Assembly (NCBI RefSeq): GCF_964194025.1
Contig: NC_134471.1
Coordinates: forward strand, 40,858,001 to 40,922,000
Source: Convolutriloba macropyga
Taxonomy: Eukaryota
Length of the DNA: 64,000 bases
Direction: 5' to 3'
Part shown: positions 33,072 to 63,560 of the stretch, piece by piece
Layout of the letters: each line of letters starts with the position of its first letter
Numbering within the stretch: position 1 is the first letter of the stretch
Notes under the pieces: model-generated
Database searches by the model: none
What the model was told of the DNA's origin: nothing
What the model saw: the letters and a program-made list of their open reading frames with translations, nothing else
Program-made: the position numbers and the translations under genes

Positions 33072-33559
33072 GGTTCCAATATACACGATCCAGCTATTGG
33101 TTAAAGGGTCCAAATGGGTCCAGATAAGGTCTTTTCATAACAAATTAATTAACTTCGAGCATGGTCTTTTAATAGATCAAGCTTGATCTTAGCATGAGCC
33201 GAGGATTGCATTTTTGTTGGATTAATAATAGTTATTTCTCCTTTACTTCTTTTGTAGATGTGACATCTACCGGCAACACCAAACTATCATTACAACAGGC
33301 AGACCACTTTTGAAAAAACCGGGAGGAATTTTGCCAAAAATACTTAAGAAAATTTGAAATGCTATGAAAAAATAGCTTTCGCAAGTAACATATAATGCGA
33401 ATTTGATGGGCTGAGTTCAATTAGTTGACACAGCTCTAACAATCAACTTTTTATTGGCGACGACTTTAGTGTGTTATAATTTACTTCATTTGATTCTGTA
33501 ATTTGTTTTTTTTAATATATTCAAAAAAAGACAGTTTGATATCAGTGGTTCTGAGCATT

Positions 33560-34900: not shown

Positions 34901-37343
34901 CGAAAGGGGTTGCTGAGAATGATTATGGGTCGATGATCGCTGCAGGTCTAATCAGACGATGAAAAATCTCGTTGAGGGTCTTCCACACGAGATTGCCATT
35001 ATCATTTAACATGAAACTCTTTAATAATAGAGAGAAGTTTTTTATGCGTCTGTTCATTTTCGAATTTCTTCTGTTTGTGCCAGTCTGTTTGTACTGGTAC
35101 GTTAGCCTAATTGTTGTTATAATGTTATTTAATGCGTTCATCAGTTTTTTATAGTTTGTGCTAATGTTCTAAGCCCTTCATTGTGGCCCTTTATCCCAAA
35201 CTGTGATAATCTATATGTGAATCTGTTTGTGAAAATGTATCTGTGAAACAAGCAGCCCTCTATTCACCTCTATTCTTCTACTATTCTGACAAAACGGATT
35301 TGCAGTTGCTGGAAACAGTTGATCAACCACAATTTATACCGCTTACAATGCAGCCTATGCCACAAATGGTCCCATATTAGATGCACGAAGCTAAGCAAAG
35401 ACAACATCAAAGGAGAGACAACCTCATAGACCTAATTAGCTGTTGTTTTAGGCCCACAACTCCCCGAGTTAGCTTAGTTAGTCTCCGTGAAGTTTCGCAG
35501 AATCTTCTGGCAGCCGCTACCAGTCAGAGGAGCCGAGAACCGGAATCTGTCATAATGACGGACCTATGCTCAAATTTTTCTCAAATGACCCACTACCCTA
35601 CCCAAAACGACACAGAAACCCTCCCCTCTTCACGATGACTGACAAAACCTGACAACTTCCCGCCTTCCGCTAGTGACTGGTTACCCAAAATATATCTCGA
35701 TGTTGTCCATTGAAAACCAAAGTTCATCAGACTCAATAAGTGCAAAAGCAACAACGCCTTTGTCGAATCGCTTGATGAAGCTCTGCGACAACTAGCCGAC
35801 AACACGTGTCATTCCAATTGCGCAGTGACAGCTCCAATGGTCTTGCCACACTTGATTCTGGCCCGAACAAAGAGGTACTGACTCTGTCAACAAAACCGTT
35901 CTCGAAAGACTTCAGCTGTGCAATCAAGGCAAACTAGACGAGCTCCTTATTGAAGCAAAAGCACTCCAAATTTGGACGAGCATTGGAGCAGAACGCCAGT
36001 CGTAACTCATCAAGAGCTCTACCGGATTCATGAAAGAAGGAAAAATTGGCAAGGCCATCAGAACACTCGACAGTGATGCAAAAAGCAAAGTTTTGTCACT
36101 GAAGGACCAAATCGGGGACAAAACTGTTGCCGTAATTCTAGCCAATAAACACCCCAAAGGCCAACAGATAAACGCTTCATGCCTTGTCAACCACAACAAA
36201 TCTAACCGCTTTCCCTTTTACAACTCAATCTTTGAAAAAAGCGATGATAGCGCAATTGAAAAAGTAGCTCACTAAAGAAAAGGGGCACATGGACCCCGTG
36301 GTCTGGACTCCTGTCAATGGAGAAGACATCTGACCTCGTTCGACAATGCTGAATCAACCTCCGGAAAACAGTAGCCAAACCATCTTGCACAATAGCGACT
36401 GAGGTATTGCCCAATTCTTCATTAGAAGCGGACAACAACAGGAGACTAATCCCACCTGACAATTGTGCAGGCGTACGAGCAATTGGGATAGGGGAAGTTC
36501 TGCGCCTAATTATTTAGCGATGCATCTCAAGCATTCTAGGTGAAGAGGCCCAGAGAATTGGCGGCAACAATCAGCTCTGCCTTGGGCAGACCGCAGATAT
36601 CGAACATTCAATCCACGCTCTGCGTAGCAACTTCCACAACGAGAACTGTTAAGCCATTCTACTAATAAATGCCACTAATGCTTTAAATCTACTAAACAGA
36701 ACAACCGCCCTTGAAAAAATTCGCAGGACTTGCCCTTGTGTCCGCATACCTCTCCTCTCACAAACTCCTACCAGACACCAAGCCAATTTTTGTTGCCAAA
36801 AAAGCCATCTTATCTTGCGAAGGTTGCAGTCAAGGAGATCCACTAGCCATGCTAATTAGCGGGATTGCAATAAAGGCTCTAAGCCTGAAGTTGCAGACAT
36901 CAAGAACCGTGCAGAAGTGGTCCGCTGACGACGGTAACGCAGCCGGGTCTCTCCAGCGTATACACGAACTCTGAGAATTTTTCCAATCAGGAGCCTGGCT
37001 AGAGTTCTGGCTATCACGTAAACGCGCCAAAAAGCCAGGTAATTGTCAAATCATCGACAAAACAAAAGACCGACAATATTTTTGCAAACACCAAAGTCCA
37101 AATTTTCAGTTGTGCGAGAATGTTCGGATCAGTTATTGGCAGTGAGGAGGAAACGCAGAATCTTTGAAAACACAAAACCGACGACTACATGAACTTAATT
37201 CAGAAATTTTAAACATTGGCAAGTCATCAACTCATGCAGCCTACCACAGCTACATCAAAGGGCTTCAAAATAAAATTACCAAGAACAAGCTCATCCCTGT
37301 CTTGACGTACATATGGTCCAGACGAGATAACGAGACAGGTATT

Positions 37344-43476: not shown

Positions 43477-43894
43477 TATAGGTGCGAAAACACACAATCG
43501 TTAATTTAAATTGATCGAGATCGATAACTGCATTCAACAACGTATAAAGGCCAAAAAGCCCCTCTCCATGGCCCGGCAAATCCAGCTTGATCTTTTTTAG
43601 CAGGTATTTGTCTGAGTCGATTTTCGACTCAGATTGGTCACCGATACGTTTTCGAAACATAAAAACATTAAGCCTAAAAAGAGCGCAATCGATTCAGTAT
43701 ATTAGTAGGCTCAACGAAAATTATGTTTAACGAACTTTTTCTGAGCTCTCTACGTATAGAAGAACGGATATAAGGCTTATATGGTTAAGAGATTACGTAA
43801 TAAACTTTCTCGCTGGATAGCGCATAGATTTCTCGCTGCTCTTTTATTTAAATAGCGCTTTAAATAGATTGTTCATTTAGTTTACTCGGTAACA
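43477..43894 (-). repeat. 3' LTR (~418-420 bp; minus strand TGTTACC…CCTATA[CA])
   Basis: It begins TGT directly after the purine-rich GGGCCGGAGGA (PPT, 43895-43905), overlapping the pol end GPEDVTE*. It matches 53811-54228 and contains a 10-bp hairpin tctgagtcga-ttt-tcgactcaga (43611-43633). Confidence 0.9.
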
Positions 43895-45315
43895 TCCTCC
43901 GGCCCGGAAGAAAATGTTGGGAGGATCGGTACAAGCTTAACGAGTGGGCGGACGAGCGATCCGGATGACGTGCGTAAGACGGCGGAGCGGGCGACGCTGT
44001 CGGAGCCGTACCGAAGTTCCTCAATCCGAGCGGTTGGATAGTAACTCCTAGGGTTGCTTTCTTCAACGATCCAAACTAAATCACCAACCTTGAGGTGATG
44101 CTCGGCAGGCGTCTGCCACTTAGATCTACGGTTCAACGCAGGTACGTACTCCTTGAGCCAACGTGCCCAAACTGCATTGGCGTATGACTGTGCACGGGCG
44201 TATCGCTTACGATGATCGAACTCGTCGACGCCAACGATAGGCGGAATTCTGGTTGCTTGGTTACCGAGTAGAAAATGATTAGGTGTTATAGCGCCTAGGT
44301 CGGACGGGTCGGCGCTTACGGGCGTTAAGGGACGTGAGTTCAGTGCGTATTCGACCAGACAAAAAGTAGTGTTCAACACCTCATCTGTGAGGCGACGCGT
44401 ACCGAGGATAGTGTACAGTACTCTTTTAAAACTCCGAACTAACCTCTCCCAGATGCCACCTTGGTGTGGCGCACTGGGTGGATTGAACCTCCACTTAATG
44501 CCCTTATGTGCAAGTTCGGTGGCAATGTTAAGCGTATTCCATTTTTCCACACATTCACGGAGCTCTTTCTCCGCTCCAATGAAGTTCGTACCATTATCCG
44601 ACCAAATCATAGCAGGAGTACCCCGACGGGAGACGAACCGCTCCACTCCCATTACACAAGAACTAGTGTCCATGGACGGGACAACTTCAACATGGCCAGC
44701 ACGAGTAGTGAGACAAGTGAAGAGAAATCCCCACCTCTTCTCGGTAGTCCGACGAACTGTGACGTAGAATGGGCCGAAGTAATCAACCCCGGTGTTGGTA
44801 AAGGGAGGAGACTGGTATGCGAGTCTCTCTTTTGGGAGGTTTGCCATTATAGGTTGAATGGTTGCTGCACGGAACTTTCTACACAAGACGCAGTTTGATT
44901 TGATGGAACGCAGTGTGGAACGTAGTTTTAGGATGGCATAACGTTCCTGTACCTTTGACCTTAAGTAATCAATGCCCTGATGATGGTTCTTCAAATGAGT
45001 ATGCCGCAGAAACAGTTTAACAAAAGTATGACGCGCATCCAGCACGATAGGATGCTTAGTGTCAAAGTCAATTTCCACTAGCCGTCGGAGTCGACCAGAA
45101 GAACGGATGAGACCATGAGGCCCAATAAACGGAGTAAACTGAGCAATGCGGCTGCTCTTCTTAACAGATTTGTTGTCAAGAAGATCCTTTCTTTCAGTAC
45201 TAAAGGACTCTTCCTGAACCAAGTACTGGAGATGACGCTCGGCTTCGTCAAGCTCAACAGGATCGGCTATGCTGCCGTCTACGGTACGGTAACTTTCATG
45301 AGATGGTAAAAGACG
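43882..45315 (-). CDS. pol: BEL/Pao integrase region (separated from upstream pol by an apparent 1-nt deletion near 45315)
   Basis: HHCC zinc finger (H…HHQG…CVLC), GVDYFGP, SDNGTNF, GGIWERLV (DDE), LNSRPLT…TPNHFL, WLKEY (DUF5641-type C-terminus). The frame is open from RLLPSHESY to the stop. Confidence 0.95.
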   Translation of the reverse strand, partial: RLLPSHESYRTVDGSIADPVELDEAERHLQYLVQEESFSTERKDLLDNKSVKKSSRIAQFTPFIGPHGLIRSSGRLRRLVEIDFDTKHPIVLDARHTFVKLFLRHTHLKNHHQGIDYLRSKVQERYAILKLRSTLRSIKSNCVLCRKFRAATIQPIMANLPKERLAYQSPPFTNTGVDYFGPFYVTVRRTTEKRWGFLFTCLTTRAGHVEVVPSMDTSSCVMGVERFVSRRGTPAMIWSDNGTNFIGAEKELRECVEKWNTLNIATELAHKGIKWRFNPPSAPHQGGIWERLVRSFKRVLYTILGTRRLTDEVLNTTFCLVEYALNSRPLTPVSADPSDLGAITPNHFLLGNQATRIPPIVGVDEFDHRKRYARAQSYANAVWARWLKEYVPALNRRSKWQTPAEHHLKVGDLVWIVEESNPRSYYPTARIEELRYGSDSVARSAVLRTSSGSLVRPLVKLVPILPTFSSGPEDVTE

Positions 45316-48300
45316 AGCACATATGCGGTGACACGCAGTAATTTTTGATAAGAACTGAACTTATCAAACGGGATTAGATTGATACTTTGTTCCTTAGGGG
45401 GCTTGGTTACGGATGCGGCTAAAGATGAGATGGAGTCATCATCTTGTTCCTTGGTTACAACGCCGAGTTTGATGTTATCAACGACCTCAGTATTTGGCAC
45501 AAAAGGGAATTGCTTAGTTCTCAAGAAGTCAGGACCCCTCACCCAGCTACTTGATTGCAAAACTTCAGCGGACATGCCACGCGTGCCAGCATCTGCCGGA
45601 TTATCACAAGTGGTGACGTGGTTCCATTGGTCAACGCTGGTGTTCTCCAGGATTTCACTAACACGATTTGCAATGAAGATGGGGTGTTTGTTTGTTGAGT
45701 TTATCCACTGCAAGACGATGGTACTATCTGTCCACATAAAGACTTTATCCACAGTAACCGTTAATGCTCGACAGATTTCCCTTTTTAAACGGGCAGCGAG
45801 GAGAGCGGCTTGTAATTCCAACTTAGGAACTGTCATTACCTTCATAGGTGCAACACGGGCCTTGCCCAAGACAAACGCCAGCTCTGTTTCAATCTCCCCG
45901 GAGGTGCAAGTTACTTGAGCCCTGAGAAAACCTACTGCACTGAATACGTCTTGCGAGCTATCACCAAACATGTGGAGTTCAAGATGTTGGAATGGTCCTG
46001 AAAAGTAACTTCTCGGTATAGTGATCTCAGCTAACCGCGGCAGTTCAACACACCAGGCAAGGAATCTGTCAACTGTGTCTTTAGGTAACTCGTCATCCCA
46101 ACTTTGTCCATTGGCACGCCAAATGTCTTTCAAGATTAGCCGAGCACCAACAGTGAACGGTGCGACAAGACCAATTGGGTCGTAGACCTTTGACACAAGA
46201 CTTAGGACCAAGCGCTGTGTTAAACTTTTCGTGATGGTGCTGTTAGTACCCCTGCTCACAACCAGAGTATCGTTGTTGTGATCCCACTTAAGCCCAAGCA
46301 CGTGCATTGATTCCTCCTTGGATGAAACGATGACCTTCGGTTCAGTGGATTGAGCAGACCCATCAATTCGGTCAGCCAGATCTGGTACATTGCTTACAAA
46401 CTTAGTAAGCTTGAACCCACCTAGATGGAGAAGATGAACCAATTCCTTCGACCTAATGAGGGCCCTCTCGGGGGATTCCACTGAGTCCAAGTAATCGTCC
46501 ATGTAGAAGTTCTCAAGGACGGCTTTCGCAGCTTCTGGGTACTCCTTAGCATTATCGCGTGCCGTGCGCTGAAGTGCGTAGTTGGCGCAGGTGGGTGAAT
46601 CTTTTGCCCCAAAGATGTGGCGCGTATACTGGTGTACCACAACATTTGATGTGGGGTCCTCCCGCCACAAAAAGCGCAATGATGGTTGATCACATGGCAA
46701 CACTCCAACTTGGAGGAACATTCCCTCGATGTCGGCGGATACGGCAAATGGATGTTGTCTGAACCGTAGGAGTACATAGATTAGGTTTTGTAGTAGGTCA
46801 GGTCCGGTAAGTAATGACTTATTAAGAGATGCGCCATGGAATTTTGCTGCTCCGTTTAGTACCCTACGAACCTTACCCGGCTTGTTCGGGTTAACAACCG
46901 GATGGTGTGGTAGGTACCACTCTCGTTCCGAGCGACTTTCCACCTTATGAGCATCTTTGACCCTTACTACGTAGCCTTTGTCTAAGTCCTCTTTGATGGT
47001 ATTCGAGTATTTTTCCCTTAATGTCTGATCTTTCGTTAGCCGCTTTTCCAAAGACTTTAATTGAACAAGTGCTGAGAAATAATTGTTGGGCAGTTCGATG
47101 TTATCTTCAGCCCATAGCATTCCGACATCGTACCTTTTTCCATTATGCACGGTGGTGTTTTCAAGAATTTCATGCGCACGTGCATCCGATGAGGATCGTG
47201 GGTCTACTTGCTTAAGTGCGCCGTACGACTCCATGTCGTACCAAGATTTTACCTGACTAGCGAGTTCAAAATCCTGCTCCAAATTAGCTTTGAAACAAGT
47301 CGAGACTAAACCTGAAGACGACGGTAGAGGGCCGCTTAGAACCCAACCTATGGGCAAGCGAACAGCGAAGGGCGAGGACTTCTCGTCGGCAGCGAAGTAC
47401 TCTAACGGGCGGATGGCATGATACACATCCTGTCCAAGTATCATCTCGATGTTTCCATAGCAATATGTAACTGGGTCTAGAACTGCTAGGTGCGGGTATG
47501 TTTCCTGAAGTGCTTTAATGTTAATGACATCGGCGCCTACATTCAAATTTTCCTTTACGTAAGGGCTGACTTTAAATGGTTCAAATGCTTGGTTGTCGCG
47601 TGGTGTTACAATTAGTTCAACTAACTCAGTGTCTACGACCTCTTCGGTATTTATACCCTTGACTGTTAGTTTCAATGCTGTACCGTGCAAACCAAGTCTA
47701 TTTGCAAGATCATTGGACACCCAAGAGTTACTGCAAGCGGTATCGCACAAAACTAAAGCCGTGGTATCTTTACCGGTAGAGCTCTTTAACTGTAATTCAG
47801 TCACCTGAAGGAGGCCTTTCACATTACTCACAGATGACAAAGTGGTGGTCTTGCTCGATGATTGGACACTAGGGAGTTTACTTTGATTTGTGCCAGCATT
47901 AGAATTACTGTTGTTGTTGTTTGGAGGGGATTTTGATGGATAAACCCTATCAGCTCCATGGAGAAGAGTTTTATGGGAGCTGTTGCAACCGTCCTTCCTG
48001 CATTTCCTGGGGTTTGGGCATTGCCTGAACATATGCTTTTCTCTCAAACATGAGAAACACAGTTTTGCTTCAGCCACTACCTTTGCTCGCTGAGTGGGAG
48101 ACTTTTCTTTAAATACCCTACACTCCCAGATGCGGTGAATACCTTTACACACAATGCAGCGAGGGGTTGCAGGCGTTGCTGATGTTGAGGCTGGTCTCTG
48201 AGTGCCCTTAGTTTGTGTATTAGCAGCAAAAGTTCTTGAGGCAACTTTGGTCTTTACTACTGAGTTGGTGTTATCCTCAGTTCTTGCTTTCGACGAAGTT

Positions 48301-49655
48301 TGTTTCATTAAATCATGTGCCTCGGCCTTCTGCTTCAACCAATCGTTGAAGTCGAGGAGTGTTGGCTTAACCCAATGTTTCTTCACGGTGAAGAGTGACC
48401 AAGACTCTTTCAGATTGGGCGGCAATTTTTGCACAGCCGTGTTGAGGAGTGAGGCACTCTTAAGGTCTGCGTCATATGAAAGTGATTTAAAGACCCCAAC
48501 AAGACTTGAAATTGTTGCAGAATAGTTTATGATGTTATCACTATTGTGCATCTTTAGTGGTGGAAAAGAGCTGAGTTTTTCTAAGTGTGCACTGACTACT
48601 GCCTGTGGTTGGCCAAATTTACGTTCGAGTGTCTTAAGTGCGTCCTTATACATTACACCGCAGTATGCGAACTCAGCGATGGCGGTTTTAGCTTTTCCAG
48701 TTACAAGGGTTTTTAAGTATGTTAACTTGACGTCATCAGTCAAGGACTGTGCGTCTATGGCGCTTTTAAATTGCCCGAACCATTCGTGCCACTGCAGGGG
48801 ATCACCATTGTATTGTGCCAACTTCCACTCGGGCAGTGGATCGTTCTTCTTACAAGTAATTGCGTCCGCCAATTGCTTTATCAAATCCGCAGAGTCCAAA
48901 GAAGGAGCCGAAGGTGTGGGATGCGGCGGGCCACCCCAACACAACGGGTTCGGAACGGTAGCTCCATGCGTTGGCGGAATGATCGGAGTGACAAAGGTGG
49001 GGGCGGTACTTGCGGAAGAACTAAATGGATTCGCTTGCATGAAGTCTGATGTTACGTAATTTTGAGCGCCTGCTGCTGCTTGTACATGAGGGGAGCGATG
49101 CGATGTAGATATATGAGGGTTGATTAGCGGGGCCGGTTGTACGGTGTATAAATTTGCAGATGTACGTTCAAGTGGTACTTCATTAGCTGGGACTGCTGCC
49201 GGAAAACGCCAGACATTTGGATCTGGAGGAGCAGGAGGTGCGTGGGTTATGGGTACAAAATTTTGGGGCTGAAAACTCTTTTGTGGAGGTGGTGGATGAA
49301 TTAATTGAGGTACGAAATTAATTGCGGAGGAAATGAATGGTGCAGGCGGAGAATGGGGTAACAGATTGATATTATTCGCCACGGGGTTAGTGGCTTGTAG
49401 TGGGAGTGCTTGTGGCGGGGAAGGAGGAAATCGGAATGCTGGTGGGATTAACGGAAAATGCGGTGGTGCGGGGTTTGGAACGGGGGGTGGAGGGGCTGGT
49501 ACATTTATGTGTGCCTGTTGCGGATTAAGTGCTAGCGGAGCATTAGCGAGTGCATTTAAAGGAGGTGAATGCCGAGGGCTGGTTAAATTCAACTGTCCCG
49601 GCATGCTCGCCCTGCGAGGGAATTGATGATCTAACTGTAAACCATCGAAGTGCAT
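45279..49655 (-). CDS. gag-pol: BEL/Pao gag-pol main ORF: Pro-rich region, DUF1759-type capsid, three zinc knuckles, aspartic protease, RT, RNase H
   Basis: YNGDPLQW…KLTYLK…LERKFGQP; CIVCKGIHRIWEC, CFSCLREKHMFRQC and CRKDGCNSSHKTLLH; LCDTACS; YLPHHPV, SLNKSLLTGPDL, ADIEGMF, FYMDD; LHMFGDSS, PKLELQAA, WTDS, NPADAGTRG. Confidence 0.96.
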   Translation of the reverse strand: MHFDGLQLDHQFPRRASMPGQLNLTSPRHSPPLNALANAPLALNPQQAHINVPAPPPPVPNPAPPHFPLIPPAFRFPPSPPQALPLQATNPVANNINLLPHSPPAPFISSAINFVPQLIHPPPPQKSFQPQNFVPITHAPPAPPDPNVWRFPAAVPANEVPLERTSANLYTVQPAPLINPHISTSHRSPHVQAAAGAQNYVTSDFMQANPFSSSASTAPTFVTPIIPPTHGATVPNPLCWGGPPHPTPSAPSLDSADLIKQLADAITCKKNDPLPEWKLAQYNGDPLQWHEWFGQFKSAIDAQSLTDDVKLTYLKTLVTGKAKTAIAEFAYCGVMYKDALKTLERKFGQPQAVVSAHLEKLSSFPPLKMHNSDNIINYSATISSLVGVFKSLSYDADLKSASLLNTAVQKLPPNLKESWSLFTVKKHWVKPTLLDFNDWLKQKAEAHDLMKQTSSKARTEDNTNSVVKTKVASRTFAANTQTKGTQRPASTSATPATPRCIVCKGIHRIWECRVFKEKSPTQRAKVVAEAKLCFSCLREKHMFRQCPNPRKCRKDGCNSSHKTLLHGADRVYPSKSPPNNNNSNSNAGTNQSKLPSVQSSSKTTTLSSVSNVKGLLQVTELQLKSSTGKDTTALVLCDTACSNSWVSNDLANRLGLHGTALKLTVKGINTEEVVDTELVELIVTPRDNQAFEPFKVSPYVKENLNVGADVINIKALQETYPHLAVLDPVTYCYGNIEMILGQDVYHAIRPLEYFAADEKSSPFAVRLPIGWVLSGPLPSSSGLVSTCFKANLEQDFELASQVKSWYDMESYGALKQVDPRSSSDARAHEILENTTVHNGKRYDVGMLWAEDNIELPNNYFSALVQLKSLEKRLTKDQTLREKYSNTIKEDLDKGYVVRVKDAHKVESRSEREWYLPHHPVVNPNKPGKVRRVLNGAAKFHGASLNKSLLTGPDLLQNLIYVLLRFRQHPFAVSADIEGMFLQVGVLPCDQPSLRFLWREDPTSNVVVHQYTRHIFGAKDSPTCANYALQRTARDNAKEYPEAAKAVLENFYMDDYLDSVESPERALIRSKELVHLLHLGGFKLTKFVSNVPDLADRIDGSAQSTEPKVIVSSKEESMHVLGLKWDHNNDTLVVSRGTNSTITKSLTQRLVLSLVSKVYDPIGLVAPFTVGARLILKDIWRANGQSWDDELPKDTVDRFLAWCVELPRLAEITIPRSYFSGPFQHLELHMFGDSSQDVFSAVGFLRAQVTCTSGEIETELAFVLGKARVAPMKVMTVPKLELQAALLAARLKREICRALTVTVDKVFMWTDSTIVLQWINSTNKHPIFIANRVSEILENTSVDQWNHVTTCDNPADAGTRGMSAEVLQSSSWVRGPDFLRTKQFPFVPNTEVVDNIKLGVVTKEQDDDSISSLAASVTKPPKEQSINLIPFDKFSSYQKLLRVTAYVLVFYHLMKVTVP

Positions 49656-50727
49656 TGTTGCTTGAGACAGTTGTCGGGCTGTTTGGGGCGTTTAGTTGAG
49701 TAGGCATACCAAAGTTTGTTGGTGGTGATGGAGGCGTATATTGAGGCTGTCGTTGCTCTTGCATGATGTTATTTGCAACATGTGCATCGTTGGTTACATT
49801 GGTTCTAGTACTTGGTTCTTGCGGCTCATGGACAGGGAGGTTGATGTTAGCCTCAACTTGACCATGAGTATTGAGATTAGAGTGTGACTTTGGAAGTTGA
49901 GCTGAAGAAGGTCGTTGGACAATTGCTTGGTTGGATTGGGCGATGGAACCAGAAAAGTGCAAACTCGGTTCGTTTGCAACATCTGCCATGTTCCCGGCCG
50001 GTGACGAATTAACCCAATCTTGAACAAGTTTCTTGCTCTTAACTGAACTTCTTTCGGTAAAGAGCCCACTCATTTCGCTTGTATCAGACCCGTCTGTTGC
50101 TGATTTTGTCATCAACTCAATTTCCTCAAGGGCTGCAGCAGCTACTTCCTTGCGATGATCCTCCTCAAGCTGCTCAATTTCTAATTCCCGCAATTTCGTT
50201 TGTTTTTCAATTTCAAGACGTTGTCTAGCAATGCGAAGCTTTGCCTCATTTTGTTTCTCAAGTTCCTCCCTTTTTAGTCTTGATAATTCTAATTCTCGTT
50301 GACGCTGACTTGATCTTTTTGAGGAAGTCATATGCGAACCTGATCTTGAGTGGTGAGAGGTATACATCTCTGCCTTCTCTTTGTCTTGGACCGAATTGAT
50401 ATACCCTCGAGCAGCAGCAATGAACTCGTCAGTTTTCTTTGTTACAGTCTCTAACCATTTCTCAAGATTCTTACAGGCAGCGTCTGGATCTTCAGTCTTC
50501 TGTGCCAGATCAAAGAGCTCTTCATTCTTATCAACCACTCTAGTAAAAGCATCTTTGCACTTCACAATCAGACGTTCGATCTTAACTTTCCTGTCTTGCT
50601 TATCAACAGCATTGTTAATTTCCCCATAGATGTTATTAAGTTCAGCCTCTAATTTTGTCCTCGCACTATAAAGTTTGTTAAATTTGTCCTGCAAAGTTGT
50701 CATGATCTTAAGAAAAACAGGAACCAC
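49543..50727 (-). CDS. gag: N-terminal gag segment (helical/coiled-coil, then low complexity), out of frame with the main ORF
   Basis: 394-aa ORF with an E/K/R-rich coiled coil (RELELSRLKREELEKQNEAKLR…) and an LVQDWV motif. It overlaps the next ORF by 113 nt in the +1 frame. Confidence 0.8.
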   Translation of the reverse strand: MVPVFLKIMTTLQDKFNKLYSARTKLEAELNNIYGEINNAVDKQDRKVKIERLIVKCKDAFTRVVDKNEELFDLAQKTEDPDAACKNLEKWLETVTKKTDEFIAAARGYINSVQDKEKAEMYTSHHSRSGSHMTSSKRSSQRQRELELSRLKREELEKQNEAKLRIARQRLEIEKQTKLRELEIEQLEEDHRKEVAAAALEEIELMTKSATDGSDTSEMSGLFTERSSVKSKKLVQDWVNSSPAGNMADVANEPSLHFSGSIAQSNQAIVQRPSSAQLPKSHSNLNTHGQVEANINLPVHEPQEPSTRTNVTNDAHVANNIMQEQRQPQYTPPSPPTNFGMPTQLNAPNSPTTVSSNNALRWFTVRSSIPSQGEHAGTVEFNQPSAFTSFKCTR

Positions 50728-50991
50728 AAGTTTAATTTGGTACTAATATAGAGTACACACACATGCAACAGCACAACACAAAGGGGTTATACCGAACCCT
50801 AGTGTGACGGTTTGGCTAGCAAACCGCCGAAGAGCAAAGATGTTCGTCGAGTACAATAGTACCCGGCGAAAGAAAGAAAGAACGGTGCGCAGGAAGCGCG
50901 GAAAGGGGCAGAACGGGAGACGGGACGGACGGGAAGAGACGCCGAACGAGTAACGCACGACGCAACGGGAAACCGGACGGACAAACGGGAG

Positions 50992-51206
50992 CGTCGGGCG
51001 AAAAGCGCGCGACGAAGCGGGAAAATGGCACGGGCGGGGCGGAAACGTCGGGCGGATGGCGCGACGAAACGGGAAAACGGCACGGAAGGGGCGGAAACGT
51101 CGGGCGGATGGCGCGCGACGAAACGGGAAAACTGGCACGGGCGGGGCGGAAACGTCGGGCGGATGGCGCGACGAAACGGGAAAACTGGCACGGGCGGGGC
51201 GGAAAC
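50992..51206. repeat. CpG-rich tandem array, 4 units of ~52-55 bp, in the BEL leader
   Basis: The unit cgtcgggcggatggcgcgacgaaacgggaaaactggcacgggcggggcggaaa is repeated, with degenerate related sequence extending to ~50860. Confidence 0.92.
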
Positions 51207-51268
51207 CACAAGCGAGGAGGCGAAAGATCGATGCTAGCAGACCACAGCAACAAACTCAACCAAACAAG

Positions 51269-51615
51269 CTAGCCGTAACTCCAGAATAAACTTAAGTCAC
51301 ACCCTAGAAAGAAGAAGAGGAGCTACTGCCAGGTAAACTAGCACAAACATTATGGGGTTTTATCAACGGCATCAAAACATGAAACAATTTACGGCAACGA
51401 TGTAGTATAACCAAAAGTCGAAAGGGTCAGGAAATTTACTAGCCGTAACTCCAGAACAAACTTAAGTCACACCCTAGCAAACCACCATACCCAGACAACA
51501 AAAGTGCATACTACAAAAATTAATAAAGCTACAACAAATTGCTAGCAAACAAGTGTGGTGAAAGTCACGAAACAAACCAGCCGTAACTCTAGAATGAACT
51601 TAAGTCACACCCTAG
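51269..51615. repeat. Three 39-bp direct repeats separated by unrelated spacers of 131 and 99 bp
   Basis: ctagccgtaactccagaataaacttaagtcacaccctag occurs at 51269-51307, 51439-51477 (1 mismatch) and 51577-51615 (3 mismatches). Confidence 0.93.
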
Positions 51616-51885
51616 CAAGGAACGAGACTAAACAACAAACCGGCATACTAGCAGAAAGAAATTCTACTACAGCAAAACTCAACATACTACATCATACAAC
51701 AAATAAACGGGGAATAGAAAGAAACAAGAAGACACGGAAACAAAGGGGACGGAAACGGAAAATGAAACCAGATAACCTGCGGAAAACGGCCGGTAGTGAA
51801 TAACTCAAAATGGGGAGAGCGAAACGTTTAGTAAAGCGCTATTGGAAGGAATCAACCACAAACTAACCCGCGCAACAACGCAAGA

Positions 51886-52524
51886 CTAAGAGACATTTAG
51901 GTTATTAAAGGCTTGAGTAAGTTCCGCCTCCTCGTACGCATGGCGGTTGCGGAGCGTTTTTCGACGGCGCTTGGAAAGTTTTTTCGGTCGGGACCGTGTT
52001 ATCAAGGACCGGAGGTTGTTCTTATGAGTTAAGACTATAGTGAGTGTTTTCAGCTCAAGCGCAGGCCTTTGGTGTAATGCTCTGTACTCTTTAAGTAAAC
52101 TAGGATCTTTCTGTTTACGTCTAGACACAATGCCTTTCACTAAGTGTATGGTAACTAGAGTACTACGCTTGAGCTGATCAGAAATATCAGGAGTTCCCTC
52201 TCTGGGGCAATACACTATAGCTTCTATGCGCTCCTGATAGTTTTCAAGCACTGCAATAAGCTGTGAAGGTGTTAAAGGCTTATTGTTGTTGCTTCGATGA
52301 CGTGAAAGCGAATTGTTCACTACATCATGCCATATAACTAGGCGCTTCTTATCATGAAAGAAATGACTCAACTGGAACTGCGCTGTTTTTCGGACTTTCA
52401 AAGCGTTAGGGTTGAAGCTTAAACCCGGTAATGCGTAAACGTTACGTTTGTAACGATTTTGTGTTACTTGAGGCGCAGTTTTTATGGCGTGATGAAGTGA
52501 ACTAGCAGCTAATATGAAAACCAT
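51886..52524 (-). CDS. Intact 212-aa accessory ORF in the BEL leader; function unknown, possible SGNH/GDSL-esterase-like fold with a basic C-terminal tail
   Basis: ATG-initiated, with no disruptions, on the same strand as gag-pol, and with a homolog at 34544-34846. The motif spacing VFILAASSL / ALPG / LVIWHDVVNN / ALH resembles SGNH blocks I, II, III and V. The tail is RSRPKKLSKRRRK. Confidence 0.8.
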   Translation of the reverse strand: MVFILAASSLHHAIKTAPQVTQNRYKRNVYALPGLSFNPNALKVRKTAQFQLSHFFHDKKRLVIWHDVVNNSLSRHRSNNNKPLTPSQLIAVLENYQERIEAIVYCPREGTPDISDQLKRSTLVTIHLVKGIVSRRKQKDPSLLKEYRALHQRPALELKTLTIVLTHKNNLRSLITRSRPKKLSKRRRKTLRNRHAYEEAELTQAFNNLNVS

Positions 52525-53796
52525 ATAATGTTTTTACAGCATAAATGATTTGAGCTTTGCTCAAACTCCGAGCCTTGATGTTAAATACACGATTTTCACG
52601 AGTTACCAAGAATAAGCGCTTATTTGAGAAAAAGAATTGTCTTTTTTTTCTTTTAAATCGACAACTTTATGCAATTGTTACATCCGCATTTAATAAGTTT
52701 CCTTTAGAATGATAGGGACAAAGGAATTTTTTTTTTCAAATTTGGTCAAATTTTTCCAAGATTTTTAAGTTTTTGCTACGCTTTTATGTCAAGAACTGTA
52801 AAAAACACCGCAATTTGATTATTTCTGGATTTTGACAAAATTTGTCAAAATTATTGTTTTTCAAAAAAATGTGTATGGGATGGGTTATCGGTGACCAGGG
52901 GTAATGTCGCAAATACCAGATTATAGGAAATGAAACCGAAAAAAGGGGGGTTAATAGATTTGCCGGTTTAATAAATTTAGAACGTCAAATGAAAATTAAG
53001 TTGAAGTTTGGGTAAGTCTTACAAGTTTTTTTTCTCGGTTCCAATGTGCAGCTCTTCGATAGATTTGGAGTCGATTTCTAGATGTGTCGCCAGTTCGAGA
53101 GTTGCCCTGTCATTAGAAACCACAACACACTGTATAGTTTTATGTGCCCTCAGCGTACACAATCATTTACAACCCTGTCTCCATTCGTGCCTCCAAAAGC
53201 GACCGAATCCTTGTTCACCGATGTTCGGGACTCCAGATCGCCAGGAATTCCAACATGGTCAAGTTTTTTTTTGGTACAGGTTCCAAGGCTTCGATTCCTC
53301 AGATTGTAGATCGGCAAATTTCACACTAATCACTTTTCTCATTCAATTTTGAGGGGAATTGAATCTCAAATAAATGAATTGTGTCAATTTTATTGCGATT
53401 CAATTATTATTGCAAATCGCTTTCACGTTAATAACGAAAGCCAATGCCAATTAAGGCCCGCCCCTTCCGAGTTGATTCTCTGCAAAATGCCTGCCAATTT
53501 AATGCCACACGGGAAAGTAACCGATAAGTTTTGGTCACAATCAGATTGGGATTTGCTAACTAATGGAAATAATTTTTTTGGGACTAAGGAGCAAGGTGAA
53601 GGTATCAACATTCCATGATCAATAAAGAGCGGGGAACGATAATTTGACCGAACTTAATTGCAATCAGAAATTATTCTTTGCAGGTTCTTCCACAAGAGTA
53701 GAGGCAATCAATTGTACACTTCGTAAGGGTAAAGCAAATCGTTTGATTTACAAGACGCCCAATCTCGAATCGAGGCCCCCTCGAATTATAGAGGGG

Positions 53797-53806
53797 CGCG
53801 GCACCA
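53797..53806 (-). promoter_or_regulatory. Primer-binding site (tRNA-His-like)
   Basis: Minus-strand TGGTGCCGCG starts 4 nt after the shared LTR sequence. The first 8 nt are complementary to the usual eukaryotic tRNA-His 3' end (…CGGCACCA). Confidence 0.65.
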
Positions 53807-53810
53807 GCAA

Positions 53811-54228
53811 TATAGGTGCGAAAACACACAATCGTTAATTTAAATTGATCGAGATCGATAACTGCATTCAACAACGTATAAAGGCCAAAAAGCCCCTCTC
53901 CATGGCCCGGCAAATCCAGCTTGATCTTTTTTAGCAGGTATTTGTCTGAGTCGATTTTCGACTCAGATTGGTCACCGATACGTTTTCGAAACATAAAAAC
54001 ATTAAGCCTAAAAAGAGCGCAATCGATTCAGTATATTAGTAGGCTCAACGAAAATTATGTTTAACGAACTTTTTCTGAGCTCTCTACGTATAGAAGAACG
54101 GATATAAGGCTTATATGGTTAAGAGATTACGTAATAAACTTTCTCGCTGGATAGCGCATAGATTTCTCGCTGCTCTTTTATTTAAATAGCGCTTTAAATA
54201 GATTGTTCATTTAGTTTACTCGGTAACA
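53811..54228 (-). repeat. 5' LTR
   Basis: Apparently identical to 43477-43894 and followed on the minus strand by the PBS. Confidence 0.9.
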
Positions 54229-54494
54229 TCCTCCGGCCCGGAAGAAAATGTTGGGAGGATCGGTACAAGCTTAACGAGTGGGCGGACGAGCGATCCGGAT
54301 GACGTGCGTAAGACGGCGGAGCGGGCGACGCTGTCGGAGCCGTACCGAAGTTCCTCAATCCGAGCGGTTGGATAGTAACTCCTAGGGTTGCTTTCTTCAA
54401 CGATCCAAACTAAATCACCAACCTTGAGGTGATGCTCGGCAGGCGTCTGCCACTTAGATCTACGGTTCAACGCAGGTACGTACTCCTTGAGCCA
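54229..54494 (-). repeat. 266-bp duplicate of the integrase 3' end plus PPT, attached outside the 5' LTR
   Basis: Matches 43895-44160. The ORF track shows the identical peptide WLKEYVPALNRR…GPEDVTE in both places. Confidence 0.93.
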
Positions 54495-60424: not shown

Positions 60425-61749
60425 GTCTCACAGGCGCTGCTGTTTGCGCCTTCAGAAAATCCAGTATTGACAGGGTGCTAGACAGTAAAAACCTAAAGAA
60501 GCCTCGCAGCTCTCGAGCCGATAGTCATCTTAGTTGGCAGCTTCAATCTAACCAAAGTCTGGTACCAGCCAATTTTTCTTTTTGCCACATGAATGTTCAA
60601 CAGGACCTAACCAGAGACGAAACGTTATCTAACGAGTTTCTACCTTTAATGCATGAGTGGGTCGAACCAGTAGCAAGGCGACCCATTGCCTACTCGTTGT
60701 CATACAATTTTCAAAGCCTAGCTGCGGATGTTTACCAGAACTACACTCAGCTATATGTTACGACGAATAAACTGAACCTTCTAAAGCTTACAGTGGACAA
60801 CAATTTCGAAAATCTTCAAGCCACCACAAGTCATTTCATCAATCTGCCAAACCTAGGTGCTCAAGTGTTCGAAAAGGGTCTCTTTGACGATAATTTTACC
60901 TATTTTGTTCGACTAAAGGACAATAACGTATACGTTGGAAGCACCTGGACTGTGTACAAAGCACCCAGGAATCTCTGTCATCATTACACAACATGCTTGG
61001 ACTGCTTGCAGACCTCGAGGGATCCCGAATGTCTGTGGAACCCGGATTCCGAAATGTGTGAAGGCCACGTTGGTGCCATAATTCCGGAGGGATCCAACTT
61101 GACCACCCAAGTGGCTTCATGCCCAAACAAGGTTCCAGCTGATGAAACATCATATCACGTGGCGTTCCTTCCGCCTCTTCTGAGAGACCAGGCTCCAGAG
61201 GCTGTGTTTGCTGCGAGTGAAGTAACCTTGTTCTGTGGTGCTAATTTTTCCATCTCCAAACATTTCACTCCCGACCAATCTTCCACTGAAATTTATCCCC
61301 CCGAGGCGCGGTGGTACGAAAACAGCCGCGACGTCTCGTCACAAAGTGTAGGCAAGTGCGGAACTAACGTGGGTGTCAATACATTGTCGTGTTTTGATCC
61401 AGTTACAACGTCAATAGCCACAACGGATCAGATTGGCCCGAGTTTAACACGTAAAACAATAACCGGGTTCTCCTATTCCTTACTTAAAGTAGCGGCCCAA
61501 AAAACAGCCAATTATACTTGTGTTTTCCATTATTCGCCAAAAGACTTCAGCTCGGATTCTGTCGTGCTGAAAGTTTTAACACGTAAGGAGCAAGCCGACC
61601 AGCTTTACACAAAATACCTAGAAGAACTTCGCCAGTACTATACACGGAAATGCGAGATTGACGCTTATTGTGAAACTGATGGTTGTAAATTGGATAACGA
61701 AAGACGGTTTCGAAGTTGCTTAAATCAACAGATAACAGCCAAGACTTGA
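60425..61749 (+). CDS. Semaphorin coding exon 4 (end of Sema domain, PSI domain, Ig-like domain, helical Cys-containing tail; no TM segment)
   Basis: Acceptor ttctgttacag|GT in phase 1 gives …FYATFNQYYLPK-G-LTGAAVCAF (the Sema SAVCAF motif). Further motifs: PLMHEWVEP; PSI CHHYTTCLDCLQTSRDPECLW…C; Ig VTLFC…ARWY…ANYTCVF. The stop TGA is at 61747-61749. Confidence 0.93.
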
Positions 61750-62543: not shown

Positions 62544-63560
62544 ATGTTGCCAATGTTATTGCAAATTTCAAGATGATTCAAATAAACCGCCAAATTGCAA
62601 CAAAAACTTTTTGTTGACTCTTTTGTCCAGTAACTTGAAACTTAGACGTGCTCTTTTAACAAATGATTAGACTAGAGAAATGTTTTAAAACATGTTTTGG
62701 TGGGTGACGTTTGATCCAGAGCGCCAAAAGAACGCTCCTTCTCATTCTAGGATACAGAAGACTCTTTTGACACTTTCCTAACGATTACGGTGGAAGCAGA
62801 ATCAATCCTCAACTCCGGACCACTGACTAACGTTGCTGAGCAGCCCGACAACGAGGAACCCTTGACTCCAAACCACTTTCTCATCTAGCGTCCCTTCAAT
62901 AGCTTGCCACCAGGACAATTTGGACACCAGCAATCTGCAAGCTTGAAGACATGGAAGAACACGCAGAAGCTGATGACCCACATGGCGACGCTTGGCGAAA
63001 GAGTATTTGCCAACCCTTAGCCGACGGTCAAACAACAACGAGCGACCGCTCAAAGTAGACGACATCGTTTGGGTGTTGAAAGACCAAACAACAAGAGGCA
63101 TCTGGCCACTGTGAAGGGTCATGGAAACTACACCTGGACGAGATGGAGAAAAAAGAGTCGTAAAGGTAAAAACGGTTTTCGGCACGTACGTTCGCGCCGT
63201 TTCCGGTCTCGCGCGTTTTTTCTCTGTATTTTTTTTTATTTTCTTCGCTCCGGTTTTAGGCAAAGCGAGTTACCCCTTTCCCACAAATTGATGTACTGAT
63301 GATATTGACAACATTTCAGCCTACAGTTTCTGAGCCAATTTCAAAGAAGATGACAAAAGACTTCAATCAATTGATGCTTCTGAAAACCCTTGATGCCGCC
63401 TTTGTGCCCTTGCAGCATGTTGCCAATGTTATTGAAACTTTCAAGATGATTCAAATAAACCGCCAAATTGCAACAAAATCTTGGACTCTTTTGTCCAGTA
63501 ACTTGAAACTTAGACGTGCTCTTTTAACAAATGATTCGACTAGAGAGATGTTTCAAAACA
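62544..63560 (+). repeat. ~145-150-bp direct repeats (62544-62692 and 63417-63560) flanking the BEL fragment
   Basis: atgttgccaatgttattg…ttcaagatgattcaaataaaccgccaaattgcaacaaaa…gactcttttgtccagtaacttgaaacttagacgtgctcttttaacaaatgatt is present twice with few differences. Confidence 0.9.
62720..63225 (+). pseudogene. Decayed fragment of a different BEL/Pao integrase C-terminus
   Basis: The + strand reads EAESILNSGPLT…EPLTPNHFLI*…WRRLAKEYLPTL…LKVDDIVWVLKDQTTRGIWPL*RV…PGRDGEKRVVKVKT, with stops and frameshifts. Confidence 0.85.

Follow-up and report, generated by a model that had tools for sequence, protein, structure and literature searches.

The window analysed here, a 64,000-nucleotide stretch of the Convolutriloba macropyga genome, contains a complete BEL/Pao LTR retrotransposon and a 5' fragment of a degraded LINE, each carrying an ORF of the same family, termed ORF-A and ORF-B, respectively. 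The features are as follows.

43477 to 54494, minus strand: complete BEL/Pao LTR retrotransposon with ORF-A, 11,018 bp, recognized by its LTR pair and Pfam domains
53811 to 54494, minus strand: 5' LTR, 684 nt, 100% identical to 43477-44160
53795 to 53806, minus strand: candidate primer-binding site, a TGG-initiated 12-mer located 4 nt past the 5' LTR and proposed from sequence alone
52525 to 53810, minus strand: leader from the 5' LTR to ORF-A, 1286 nt, with 10 upstream ATGs and a longest uORF of 62 aa
51886 to 52524, minus strand: ORF-A, intact, ATG-initiated, 212 aa, an accessory protein with a predicted SGNH fold
50704 to 51885, minus strand: spacer from ORF-A to gag-pol, 1182 nt, with two tandem-repeat arrays
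43888 to 50703, minus strand: gag-pol, broken by two frameshifts, no in-frame stop
43477 to 44160, minus strand: 3' LTR, 684 nt, into which the final ~270 nt of pol (DUF5641 region) extend
33547 to 35027, minus strand: degraded LINE, 5' fragment, delimited by blastn to locus L003 and comprising a short 5' region, an ORF0 relic, an ORF1 remnant and a piece of the EN-RT linker
34544 to 34846, minus strand: ORF-B, 100 aa, relic of a LINE ORF0, covering the N-terminal half of the SGNH-like protein
33979 to 34524, minus strand: LINE ORF1 remnant (coiled-coil type) in three separate pieces, found by tblastn with the ORF1 of L010 (E=1e-23)

Canonical BEL/Pao elements encode a single gag-pol, sometimes with an env-like ORF downstream. 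The window element shares with them its LTRs, a DUF1759 gag, a Pao-type aspartic peptidase, RT, integrase and DUF5641, with Pfam matches of the internal genes to DUF1759, Peptidase_A17, integrase and DUF5641, but it differs by one further conserved ORF, placed after the 5' LTR and before gag. This intact 212-aa ORF had been picked out in a sequence-only reading of the locus, and its coordinates, its minus-strand orientation and the LTR pair around it were all confirmed. The two frameshifts in gag-pol, also part of that reading, were recovered by comparison with the intact 2270-aa polyprotein of a second copy (L001), to which the window gag-pol is 95.7% identical in amino acids over residues 1-2269. 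The two copies align over 9.7 kb at 93%, and the window element is a mosaic, its 5' third being 66-89% identical to L001 and its gag-pol 98-99.8%. In the leader, identity to L001 is 66-73% and refers to alignable stretches only. Spacer length was counted to the first gag-pol codon alignable to the intact relative; the two arrays within it consist of 52-55-nt units (50954-51238) and 140-170-nt units (51239-51618), and the L001 copy has a similar 54-nt array in the matching position. In element orientation the LTRs start with TG and end with TA, not TG...CA. The flanks of the element differ, with no 4-6-bp repeat found as a target-site duplication, and no tRNA genes for comparison with the candidate primer-binding site were found in the window.

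The LINE fragment belongs to the family of L003 and is related to L010. Compared with these two relatives, both of which have an ORF2 encoding an APE endonuclease and RT, it carries two internal deletions and lacks endonuclease, RT and 3' end; L003 runs on collinearly into EN and RT. LINE parts were identified by tblastn with Pfam-verified LINE proteins from L007, L010 and L012. ORF-B had been described as an ORF lying directly upstream of a CR1-type ORF1. The arrangement stands, with the ORF1 remnant following after about 20 nt, but ORF-B is a truncated relic of a protein of ~200 aa and not an intact gene. When the stop-to-stop pieces that follow ORF-B were run against Pfam, both for the window and for L003, only weak coiled-coil matches emerged, the pieces being short and decayed.

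An alignment of ORF-A and ORF-B from the initiator Met at about 30% identity, made by eye in the sequence-only reading, was reproduced by BLASTP, which aligned both from Met1 with 30 identities in 95 residues (32%), one gap and E=4e-16 for the single comparison, a match well outside chance expectation. Longer matches were obtained with the LINE-borne ORF0 of L007 (37% identity over 205 aa, E=2e-36) and of L012 (39% over 193 aa, E=1e-34). Hence, BEL-borne and LINE-borne copies are homologous. Among family members drawn from ENA/Logan assemblies we counted 893 clusters (50% identity) at E<=1e-3 and 565 at E<=1e-10; the homologue search with ORF-B, limited by a length window, found one relative. 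No names or annotation were attached to the members examined in NCBI and UniRef, and Pfam searches with ORF-A, ORF-B and 118 relatives returned no informative family and no GDSL family at E<=1.

We resolved the carrier at 12 places with a family ORF, namely six BEL/Pao elements, five LINE lineages with APE and RT, and one solo copy. The six BEL/Pao carriers represent five lineages, and in 6/6 the ORF sits between the 5' LTR and gag. These BEL-borne ORFs are 33-50% identical to each other, and each lies within its own pair of LTRs that are 98-100% identical. Two more BEL copies from the fetched loci, the first one in L005 and the one on the minus strand of L008, lack the ORF. The distribution bears directly on the idea that ORF-A is a LINE fragment inserted in a single BEL copy and irrelevant to BEL biology. 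The mosaic structure of the window element and its long, variable leader would suit such an accident, but the ORF recurs at the matching position across BEL lineages, LINE ORF1, EN or RT sequence was found beside it in none of the BEL carriers, and one cluster of the family, P0009, by itself holds 432 member sequences. A one-off nested LINE fragment is refuted by this distribution, and we give the idea practically no credence.

The five LINE carriers (L006/L007, L010, L011, L012 and L003) are ordered ORF0-ORF1-ORF2, with ORF2 encoding APE and RT; Pfam confirmed Exo_endo_phos and RVT_1 downstream of the LINE-borne ORF. The mutual similarity of the L006 and L007 copies starts 93 nt ahead of the ORF, and in L010 the ORF0 stop and ORF1 start overlap (TAATG). 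A separate ORF1 is kept in these elements, of the PHD+CCHC type in L007 and with a coiled coil in L012, which also has an (ATTC)8 repeat 45 nt past the ORF2 stop. The PHD+CCHC architecture is type IC, reported from CR1_3 and L2_2, and a 3' end of short tandem repeats in place of poly-A is a trait of CR1-group LINEs. Membership of the LINE carriers in the CR1 group is therefore plausible, on the basis of ORF1 type and microsatellite tail rather than RT phylogeny, and both traits (the PHD ORF1 of L007 and the (ATTC)8 of L012) come from relatives and not from the window LINE's own family. ORF0 in the LINE carriers begins at the conserved Met of beta1. Some LINE forms have N-terminal extensions, which we considered as a possible coiled coil like that of ZfL2-1; this was rejected, as they are unconserved and precede the conserved internal Met.

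The solo copy, L009, is intact, and the 9 kb that follow it contain neither RT nor EN nor gag-pol. It could be taken as a real gene, and the family as host genes or domesticated copies that merely lie near retroelements. Against this, 11 of the 12 resolved places are inside BEL or LINE units with the ORF at a fixed position, copy numbers are transposon-like, and the members examined are nameless and outside NCBI/UniRef annotation. We regard a host gene family as very improbable.

The ORF is under purifying selection in both BEL and LINE contexts. For the BEL-borne ORF, dN/dS is 0.19, with 14, 16 and 42 differences at the first, second and third codon positions, and the ORF is 89% identical in nucleotides compared with 66-84% for the flanking non-coding DNA. 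A pair of LINE ORF0 copies gave a dN/dS of 0.30. LINE-borne copies do not pair with one another as nearest relatives, a hint that the classes may have exchanged the gene more than once; the deep branches, on which the number and direction of exchanges depend, were not resolved in a neighbour-joining tree with 200 bootstraps.

The structure of the ORF-A protein was predicted with AlphaFold from an alignment of 118 sequences (pLDDT 96.6, pTM 0.86), a model that replaced one built from 24 sequences (pLDDT 81). The predicted layout is an SGNH-like domain spanning residues ~1-175, with strands at 3-6, 29-31, 62-64, 100-105 and 125-127, in keeping with the five parallel strands of the three-layer alpha/beta/alpha SGNH fold, followed by an Arg/Lys-rich C-terminal helix at ~185-211. 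In the family, the median share of K+R is 0.34 in the final 35 aa vs 0.15 elsewhere. When the model was compared with PDB structures using Foldseek, SGNH/GDSL enzymes made up ~40 of the best 50 matches, led by 3p94 (E=7.9e-4, probability 1.0, TM 0.51-0.53) and including PAF-AH, 1yzf, acetyl-xylan esterases and PatB/OatA; SGNH proteins also ranked first in the Foldseek viral library. The fold guess of the sequence-only reading was thus supported, the model pointing to an SGNH (GDSL-esterase) fold for ORF-A. Sequence searches with HMMER were silent on this point. ORF-A and two family profiles run against all PDB sequences gave chance matches or none and no SGNH protein, and the 118-member profile matched no PDB sequence at E<=10, the ZfL2-1 esterase 4c1b included. 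Nor was 4c1b among the best 50 Foldseek matches, the split half-domains in its crystal hampering fold matching.

Alternatively, the protein may be a generic flavodoxin-like alpha/beta sandwich whose SGNH likeness is convergent, with the protein acting mainly through its basic tail as a small chaperone for RNA or as an adaptor for nuclear import. The Foldseek matches have modest E-values of about 1e-3 to 1e-2 at TM ~0.5, the earlier shallow model was ambiguous and matched flavodoxin-like and TIR folds too, 8/118 members have a weak match to KaiA_N (best E=4.6e-5), another flavodoxin-like fold, and the strongest conservation in the family, at W65-H66-D67, Y105 and L118, does not fall on SGNH signature residues. 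However, the deeper model is confident, its SGNH matches in PDB and most of the named viral ones have a probability of 0.9-1.0, and four sequence blocks with matching local motifs occur in the correct order after beta1, beta2 and beta3 and before the C-terminal helix. Hence, a convergent sandwich appears improbable next to an SGNH fold.

The family's motifs can be aligned with blocks I, II, III and V in a literature table covering TAP, 1YZF and the ZfL2-1 esterase, and the register proposed beforehand, GDS to AAS and DxxH to RALH, agrees with this published table. Among 118 diverse members, the putative block I nucleophile Ser (S8) occurs in 98, directly after beta1, along with G6 in 75. Block II would correspond to P33 (68/118) and G34 (99/118), cf. 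F-P-G in ZfL2-1, and block III to N70 (99/118) and N71 (108/118), both placed by sequence register and secondary structure; the block III register is uncertain, with the most conserved W65-H66-D67 sitting just before it. In block V, L150, H151 and P152 are found in 65, 105 and 51 members, respectively. The position before the Ser, where SGNH hydrolases normally have a nucleophile-positioning Asp or Thr (Asx/ST motif; PMC10792757), is Ala (A7) in 97/118, and position 148 carries K, R, Q or S, never a conserved Asp. By this register, the family appears to retain the SGNH-block Ser, Gly, Asn and His and to have lost all three canonical Asp, namely the one before the Ser, the one in block III and the catalytic one. 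The motif set had been called non-canonical, which holds for the Asp residues, but it is less degenerate than that description implied.

Esterase activity is doubtful because all three Asp are absent. It may nevertheless be asked whether the protein is in fact a catalytically active member of the LINE ES family (type IV ORF1), too diverged for HMMER and working through a Ser-His pair. Conservation of Ser, Gly, Asn and His (83-89% across the 118 members) exceeds what a pure scaffold needs, block V reads L-H-P-S as it does for the ZfL2-1 esterase in the literature table, and 3p94 is the best PDB match of the L2 esterase too. One carrier LINE also has a PHD finger in its ORF1, and PHD and esterase are ORF1 features first described in CR1-like elements. 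In contrast, the catalytic Asp is missing family-wide, the nucleophile-positioning Asp/Thr has become Ala, HMMER does not match 4c1b, and the architecture is another one, with a stand-alone ORF0 next to a full ORF1. On balance we consider an active esterase rather unlikely, and a non-canonical SGNH-like domain remains our preferred reading.

The esterase (ES) domain of LINE ORF1 proteins is reportedly a description of Kapitonov and Jurka from 2003. It defines the type IV ORF1p of CR1, L2 and RTEX, with the ORF1p of ZfL2-1 known as PDB 4c1a/4c1b (Schneider et al. 2013, PMC3905857). The esterase of ZfL2-1 is a phospholipid binder; ES-ORF1ps combine a coiled coil with the ES domain, lack RRM and CCHC, and rely on Arg-rich peptides (PMC3905857). 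As in these proteins, we find an SGNH-type module 5' of the RT gene in an APE-type LINE, joined within the protein by an Arg-rich peptide and not by a structured RNA-binding domain; 3p94, our best PDB neighbour, is also the top HHpred match published for the L2 esterase ORF1, and blocks II (P-G) and V (L-H-P-S) are similar. Unlike them, the module described here is a separate ORF0 without a coiled coil in elements that keep their own ORF1 (PHD+CCHC or coiled-coil), the three Asp appear lost with no HMMER link to 4c1b, and the family also resides on BEL/Pao LTR elements. Published ES ORF1 proteins of the Jockey superfamily have been found in vertebrate CR1/L2 subgroups only.

Gene sharing of this kind has a precedent in the Vesta LTR retrotransposons of bdelloid rotifers, whose ORF3 encodes a GDSL esterase/lipase common to the Penelope-like Athena elements (Rodriguez, Kenefick & Arkhipova 2017, PMC5408684). 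LINE esterases cluster apart, interpreted as 'independent capture' (PMC5408684). Both cases involve an extra SGNH-type ORF on an LTR retrotransposon that is also present in another retroelement class, a modular sharing of genes. They differ in that the Vesta ORF is downstream of pol with catalytic residues intact, whereas ours is upstream of gag with the Asp lost, and in that the Vesta carriers are not BEL/Pao and their partner is Penelope-like, whereas here LTR-borne and LINE-borne copies are directly homologous (E about 1e-35). A non-catalytic, RNA-binding SGNH fold is known from the OSK domain of Oskar (PDB 5A4A), a host germ-plasm protein. OSK resembles our predicted domain in having an SGNH fold without canonical catalysis, used there in RNA/RNP biology, but Oskar replaces the nucleophile Ser that is kept here and is a germ-plasm protein rather than a gene of a transposon. 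Oskar was not among the best 50 Foldseek matches.

Taken together, we propose, with a probability of roughly 80%, that the family is a retroelement accessory gene encoding an SGNH fold and a basic helix, and that it forms the 5'-most ORF ('ORF0') of BEL/Pao lineages and of three-ORF CR1/L2-like APE LINEs in the same genomes. A stand-alone SGNH-like module with a basic tail, common to BEL/Pao and LINE elements, had been suggested from the letters of the DNA; carriers, fold, selection and the many intact copies support that suggestion. The module would have passed between the BEL/Pao and LINE classes at least once, possibly by template switching between RNAs sharing one particle or RNP. By analogy, the protein may work in the manner of the LINE ORF1 esterase domain. 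Its SGNH domain would offer a pocket for lipids/membranes or for a substrate, the hydrolase chemistry being weakened or altered, its basic tail would bind element RNA or serve nuclear import, and the two could jointly aid the assembly or routing of RNPs or VLPs. Of the roles suggested in the sequence-only reading (lipid or RNA binding, anti-silencing), anti-silencing finds no pointer in these results. LINEs might co-translate ORF0 with ORF1 from one polycistronic RNA (cf. the stop/start overlap of L010), and in BEL elements the ORF would precede gag-pol on the genomic RNA. Translation in the latter is hard to account for, with ten ATGs ahead of ORF-A and 10 further ones before gag-pol. A bolder version, which we hold only tentatively, is that a very large and hitherto unrecognised pseudo-esterase 'ORF0' family has been repeatedly passed between LINEs and BEL/Pao elements of the same animal genomes, both of which would need it for a shared step unmet by gag or ORF1, for example the membrane-associated assembly of RNPs or particles, or the handling of RNA. 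If true, it would be the first accessory gene for which direct sequence homology demonstrates sharing by LTR and non-LTR retrotransposons.

The replication of LTR retrotransposons differs fundamentally from that of non-LTR ones, and RT is usually regarded as all that the two have in common. A selected accessory gene at the 5' end of both classes would point to a common step at the host interface, at the level of membranes, lipids or the handling of RNA, that does not depend on how the element integrates. The family widens the 'modular retroelement' picture of bdelloid Vesta and Athena to a BEL/Pao-LINE pair with direct homology, and adds a LINE layout of three ORFs, with an SGNH module beside a full ORF1. 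With Ser, Gly, Asn and His apparently kept and all three Asp lost, the family would make a clear case for the repurposing of an enzyme fold. It comprises at least 893 sequence clusters missed by current profile libraries and annotation, a gap that matters for transposon annotation because such ORFs would pass as orphan host genes.

The sequence-only reading had proposed that a BEL/Pao element and a LINE in the window carry the same accessory protein, alignable from the initiator Met at about 30% identity. Both ORFs, the intact BEL/Pao-borne ORF-A and its LINE-borne relic relative ORF-B, were confirmed where it had placed them, on the minus strand.

Features of the window
34544-34846, minus: ORF-B, 100 aa
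40475-40773, plus: full-length gene for the metazoan signal recognition particle RNA (Rfam RF00017; 205.8 bits, E = 7e-55), which marks the host as an animal
43477-44160 and 53811-54494, minus-strand element: BEL/Pao LTRs, 684-nt direct repeats identical at every base
50954-51618: tandem-repeat arrays beside ORF-A
51886-52524, minus: ORF-A, 212 aa, ATG start
60475-61749, plus: ORF of 424 aa, Sema plus PSI (plexin repeat) domains, few relatives in the database; probable host semaphorin/plexin-like gene, of which this would be one large exon
62796-63210, plus: short fragment with 35% identity to the C-terminal (DUF5641) part of a BEL polyprotein, and on that basis read as a third, decayed BEL relic

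In a single BLASTP comparison, ORF-A and ORF-B shared 30 of 95 residues (32%) with one gap, from Met1 of both onward (E = 4e-16), bearing out the proposed alignment. No third family copy was found in the window by tblastn or by a family HMM run over six-frame pieces.

ORF-A lies within an 11-kb minus-strand element bounded by the 684-nt LTRs, whose internal ORFs matched DUF1759, Peptidase_A17, the integrase zinc-binding and core domains, and DUF5641 (Pfam), the gene set of BEL/Pao. In element orientation the LTR starts with TG and ends with TA, and a TGG-initiated 12-mer 4 nt past the 5' LTR is a plausible primer-binding site; no target-site duplication was found around the element, whose LTRs are 100% identical. 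The leader between the 5' LTR and ORF-A is 1286 nt long and contains ten upstream ATGs; the spacer from ORF-A to the first gag-pol codon that could be aligned measures 1182 nt and contains ten more ATGs and two tandem-repeat arrays. Aligned to the intact 2270-aa polyprotein of database locus L001, the window gag-pol covered residues 1-2269 at 95.7% identity, in three segments whose frame alternates and which are free of in-frame stops, hence the two frameshifts already read from the sequence. The last ~270 nt of pol run into the 3' LTR. At the nucleotide level, gag-pol was 98-99.8% identical to L001, against 66-89% for ORF-A, leader, and spacer and about 87% for the LTR. Compared with L001, the window element is a mosaic, as would be expected if subfamilies had recombined; such recombination would have exchanged the entire 5' module, comprising LTR, leader, ORF-A, and spacer. 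Tandem-repeat arrays of 48-55-nt units adjoin the accessory ORF in three BEL families (window; L001, 11304-11649; L002, 8275-8987), lying between ORF and gag in the window and L001 and between LTR and ORF in L002; the window arrays also include 140-170-nt units. These arrays may have a regulatory role or may act as an internal promoter or IRES.

The distribution of the ORF among BEL copies refuted the reading of ORF-A as a one-off nested LINE fragment. A protein search with ORF-A returned 175 relatives, all in ENA assemblies and many exactly 212 aa long, with one 90%-identity cluster alone comprising 432 member sequences. At L001 (protein 89% identical to ORF-A), L002 (51%), and L004, L005, and L008 (33-47%), the family ORF precedes by 100-1300 nt a gag-pol in which DUF1759, Pao peptidase, and DUF5641 were recognized, in each case inside an LTR pair of 98-100% identity. 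Counting the window element, a member of the L001 family, the ORF is thus present within the LTR pairs of six BEL elements from five lineages. It was absent from two other BEL copies at the same loci and so marks particular BEL lineages, not all. Purifying selection was evident between ORF-A and its L001 counterpart, whose 72 nucleotide differences fell 14/16/42 by codon position (chi-square about 20 vs equal thirds) and gave dN 0.066, dS 0.351, and dN/dS 0.19; the ORF was 89% identical vs 66-84% for flanking non-coding DNA. For LINE-borne copies, L006 vs L007 gave 34 differences (6/11/17) and dN/dS 0.30, weaker evidence of selection than the BEL pair.

Searching 1.84 billion representatives with a family profile recovered 893 clusters at E<=1e-3, 565 at <=1e-10, and 116 at <=1e-30, almost all members being stand-alone proteins of 190-220 aa; those looked up were in ENA or Logan only, as proteins without a name. 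Several were encoded by the 5'-most ORF of a LINE, before ORF1 and ORF2 (ORF0), and ORF-A matched the ORF0 products of L007 (37% identity over 205 aa, E = 2e-36) and L012 (39% over 193 aa, E = 1e-34). In L006 and L007 (P0176 and P0329), ORF0 is followed by a 436-aa ORF1 (PHD finger and CCHC knuckle), Exo_endo_phos, and RVT_1. Their 95% similarity sets in at one common base 93 nt ahead of the called ORF, which places ORF0 at the 5' end of the element. In the apparently intact L012 (P0152), ORF0 encodes 197 aa, ORF1 a coiled-coil protein of 350 aa, and ORF2 a 1106-aa protein that includes endonuclease and RT; an (ATTC)8 run is found 45 nt past the ORF2 stop. ORF0, ORF1, endonuclease, and RT were also found in L011 (P0168; tblastn) and, in that order, in L010 (P0233), where the ORF0 stop and ORF1 start overlap as TAATG (9832-9836), suggestive of termination-reinitiation coupling. 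The 55-60-residue N-terminal extensions of some LINE forms, unconserved and preceding a conserved Met, were taken to be gene-caller artefacts. PHD+CCHC ORF1, microsatellite tail, and APE+RT ORF2 fit published descriptions of CR1/L2-like elements, in which type IC (PHD+CCHC) ORF1 is reported for subgroup 3 of CR1 and subgroup 2 of L2 (PMC4120745, PMC13343379); by these three features the carrier LINEs are candidate CR1-group members. L009 has an intact solo member (P0157, 9001-9795) that may be an orphaned or domesticated copy: the 9 kb downstream contain neither gag-pol nor endonuclease nor RT. ORFs with a BEN domain and a weak SET domain lie nearby.

The LINE fragment carrying ORF-B was more decayed. 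A protein search found one close relative of ORF-B, P0122 in L003 (74% identity), and window positions 35027-33547 (about 1.5 kb) are common to both loci, the window copy having two internal deletions relative to L003. Similarity to ORF-A goes on in L003 to about residue 149, in another frame, so ORF-B corresponds to the N-terminal half of what was formerly a longer protein. Pfam gave no match to the decayed pieces downstream of ORF-B in the window or L003, and proteins of L010, a better preserved LINE that shares its assembly with L001 and L003, were used as tblastn queries. These matched L003 collinearly (ORF0, E = 2e-19; ORF1, E = 2e-55; endonuclease, E = 4e-22; RT, E = 1e-39) and, in the window, ORF-B and then ORF1 at 34524-33979 (E = 1e-23); no endonuclease, RT, or tail was found there. 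The proposed position of ORF-B directly upstream of a LINE ORF1 therefore held, but for a 5' fragment only and a truncated ORF-B. Just downstream (32836-33053) are satellite-like arrays with a 9-nt unit, TTCACCGCA, and 31- and 34-nt higher-order periods; a Pfam Mrx7 match and ORFs made by these arrays were rejected as spurious. A second LINE (2905-4946, plus strand) retains endonuclease and RT pieces, with an Exo_endo_phos_2 match and 40% identity to the L010 RT; no ORF0-family sequence was detectable upstream, and this copy is probably 5'-truncated.

The nearest relatives of the LINE-borne proteins were not one another. P0176 was closer to BEL-borne P0203 (139 bits) than to LINE-borne P0233 (73 bits), and P0152 was closest to BEL-borne P0127, P0124, and ORF-A. 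A neighbor-joining tree built from 34 members had poorly supported deep nodes, and the split of LINE-borne P0176 and P0233 from five BEL-borne sequences appeared in only 2 of 200 bootstraps. These relationships suggest more than one exchange between BEL and LINE. Both carrier types are found together in assemblies ERZ25071359 (L001, L003, L010) and ERZ25074608 (L004, L006-L009, L012), as well as in the window.

An AlphaFold model from 24 sequences was of moderate confidence (pLDDT 81), and its Foldseek matches were ambiguous, SGNH enzymes foremost. In the confident model from 118 diverse relatives (pLDDT 96.6, pTM 0.86), helices alternate with five strands and the C-terminal helix is long, and about 40 of its 50 best PDB matches were SGNH/GDSL enzymes, supporting the SGNH fold guessed in the sequence-only reading. 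Matches included 3p94 (E = 7.9e-4, probability 1.0, TM 0.51-0.53), the best published HHpred match of the L2 esterase ORF1, along with PAF acetylhydrolase alpha subunits, 1yzf, acetyl-xylan esterases, and the peptidoglycan O-acetyltransferases PatB and OatA. SGNH-domain proteins were also foremost in a viral library, all as weak matches. None of the 118 members matched GDSL Pfam families, and family profiles found no match among PDB sequences, hence none to the ZfL2-1 esterase (4c1b), a LINE ORF1 esterase. Residues were counted in these 118 members, mostly <50% identical to each other, and compared with the SGNH block table for TAP, 1YZF, and the ZfL2-1 esterase (PMC10792757), against which the earlier register proved right for blocks I (GDS to AAS) and V (DxxH to RALH). 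Block I is G-A-S (position 6, Gly 75/Ala 22; position 7, Ala 97; position 8, Ser 98), putative block II P-G (position 33, Pro 68; position 34, Gly 99), putative block III x-N-N (position 70, Asn 99; position 71, Asn 108), and block V L-H-P-S (position 150, Leu 65; position 151, His 105; position 152, Pro 51/Gln 42); position 148 is Lys/Arg/Gln/Ser, with Asp absent. By this comparison Ser and His are retained, as Gly and Asn appear to be, and all three canonical Asp residues are replaced: the one preceding Ser, that of block III, and the catalytic one. ORF-A itself has Ala at position 6, where Gly is usual. W65-H66-D67 (112, 108, and 109 of 118) is even better conserved than the SGNH block residues. 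In the model, the blocks are predicted to follow beta1, beta2, and beta3 and to occupy the loop before the C-terminal helices, a putative pocket placement for the retained residues. The median Lys+Arg share was 0.34 in the last 35 residues vs 0.15 in the rest of the protein.

Two retroelement classes carry this conserved, selected 5' ORF, its product combining a predicted SGNH fold with a basic tail. Esterase modules are already known in LINEs (ORF1 type IV), as is a GDSL ORF3 common to bdelloid Vesta LTR elements and Penelope-like Athena elements (PMC5408684). New here are BEL/Pao as carrier; the position upstream of gag and, in LINEs, as a separate ORF0 beside a full ORF1; the direct homology, at sequence level, between LTR-borne and LINE-borne copies; the residue pattern; and the size of a family undetected by current profiles. 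The ZfL2-1 esterase binds acidic phospholipids, Arg-rich peptides are proposed to bind RNA (PMC3905857), and Oskar is an RNA-binding SGNH fold. By analogy with ZfL2-1 and Oskar, the basic tail would allow the family protein to join the RNP or particle of its element, and the SGNH pocket may serve to bind a lipid or acyl ligand or to turn it over slowly, which would aid assembly or trafficking of that RNP or particle.
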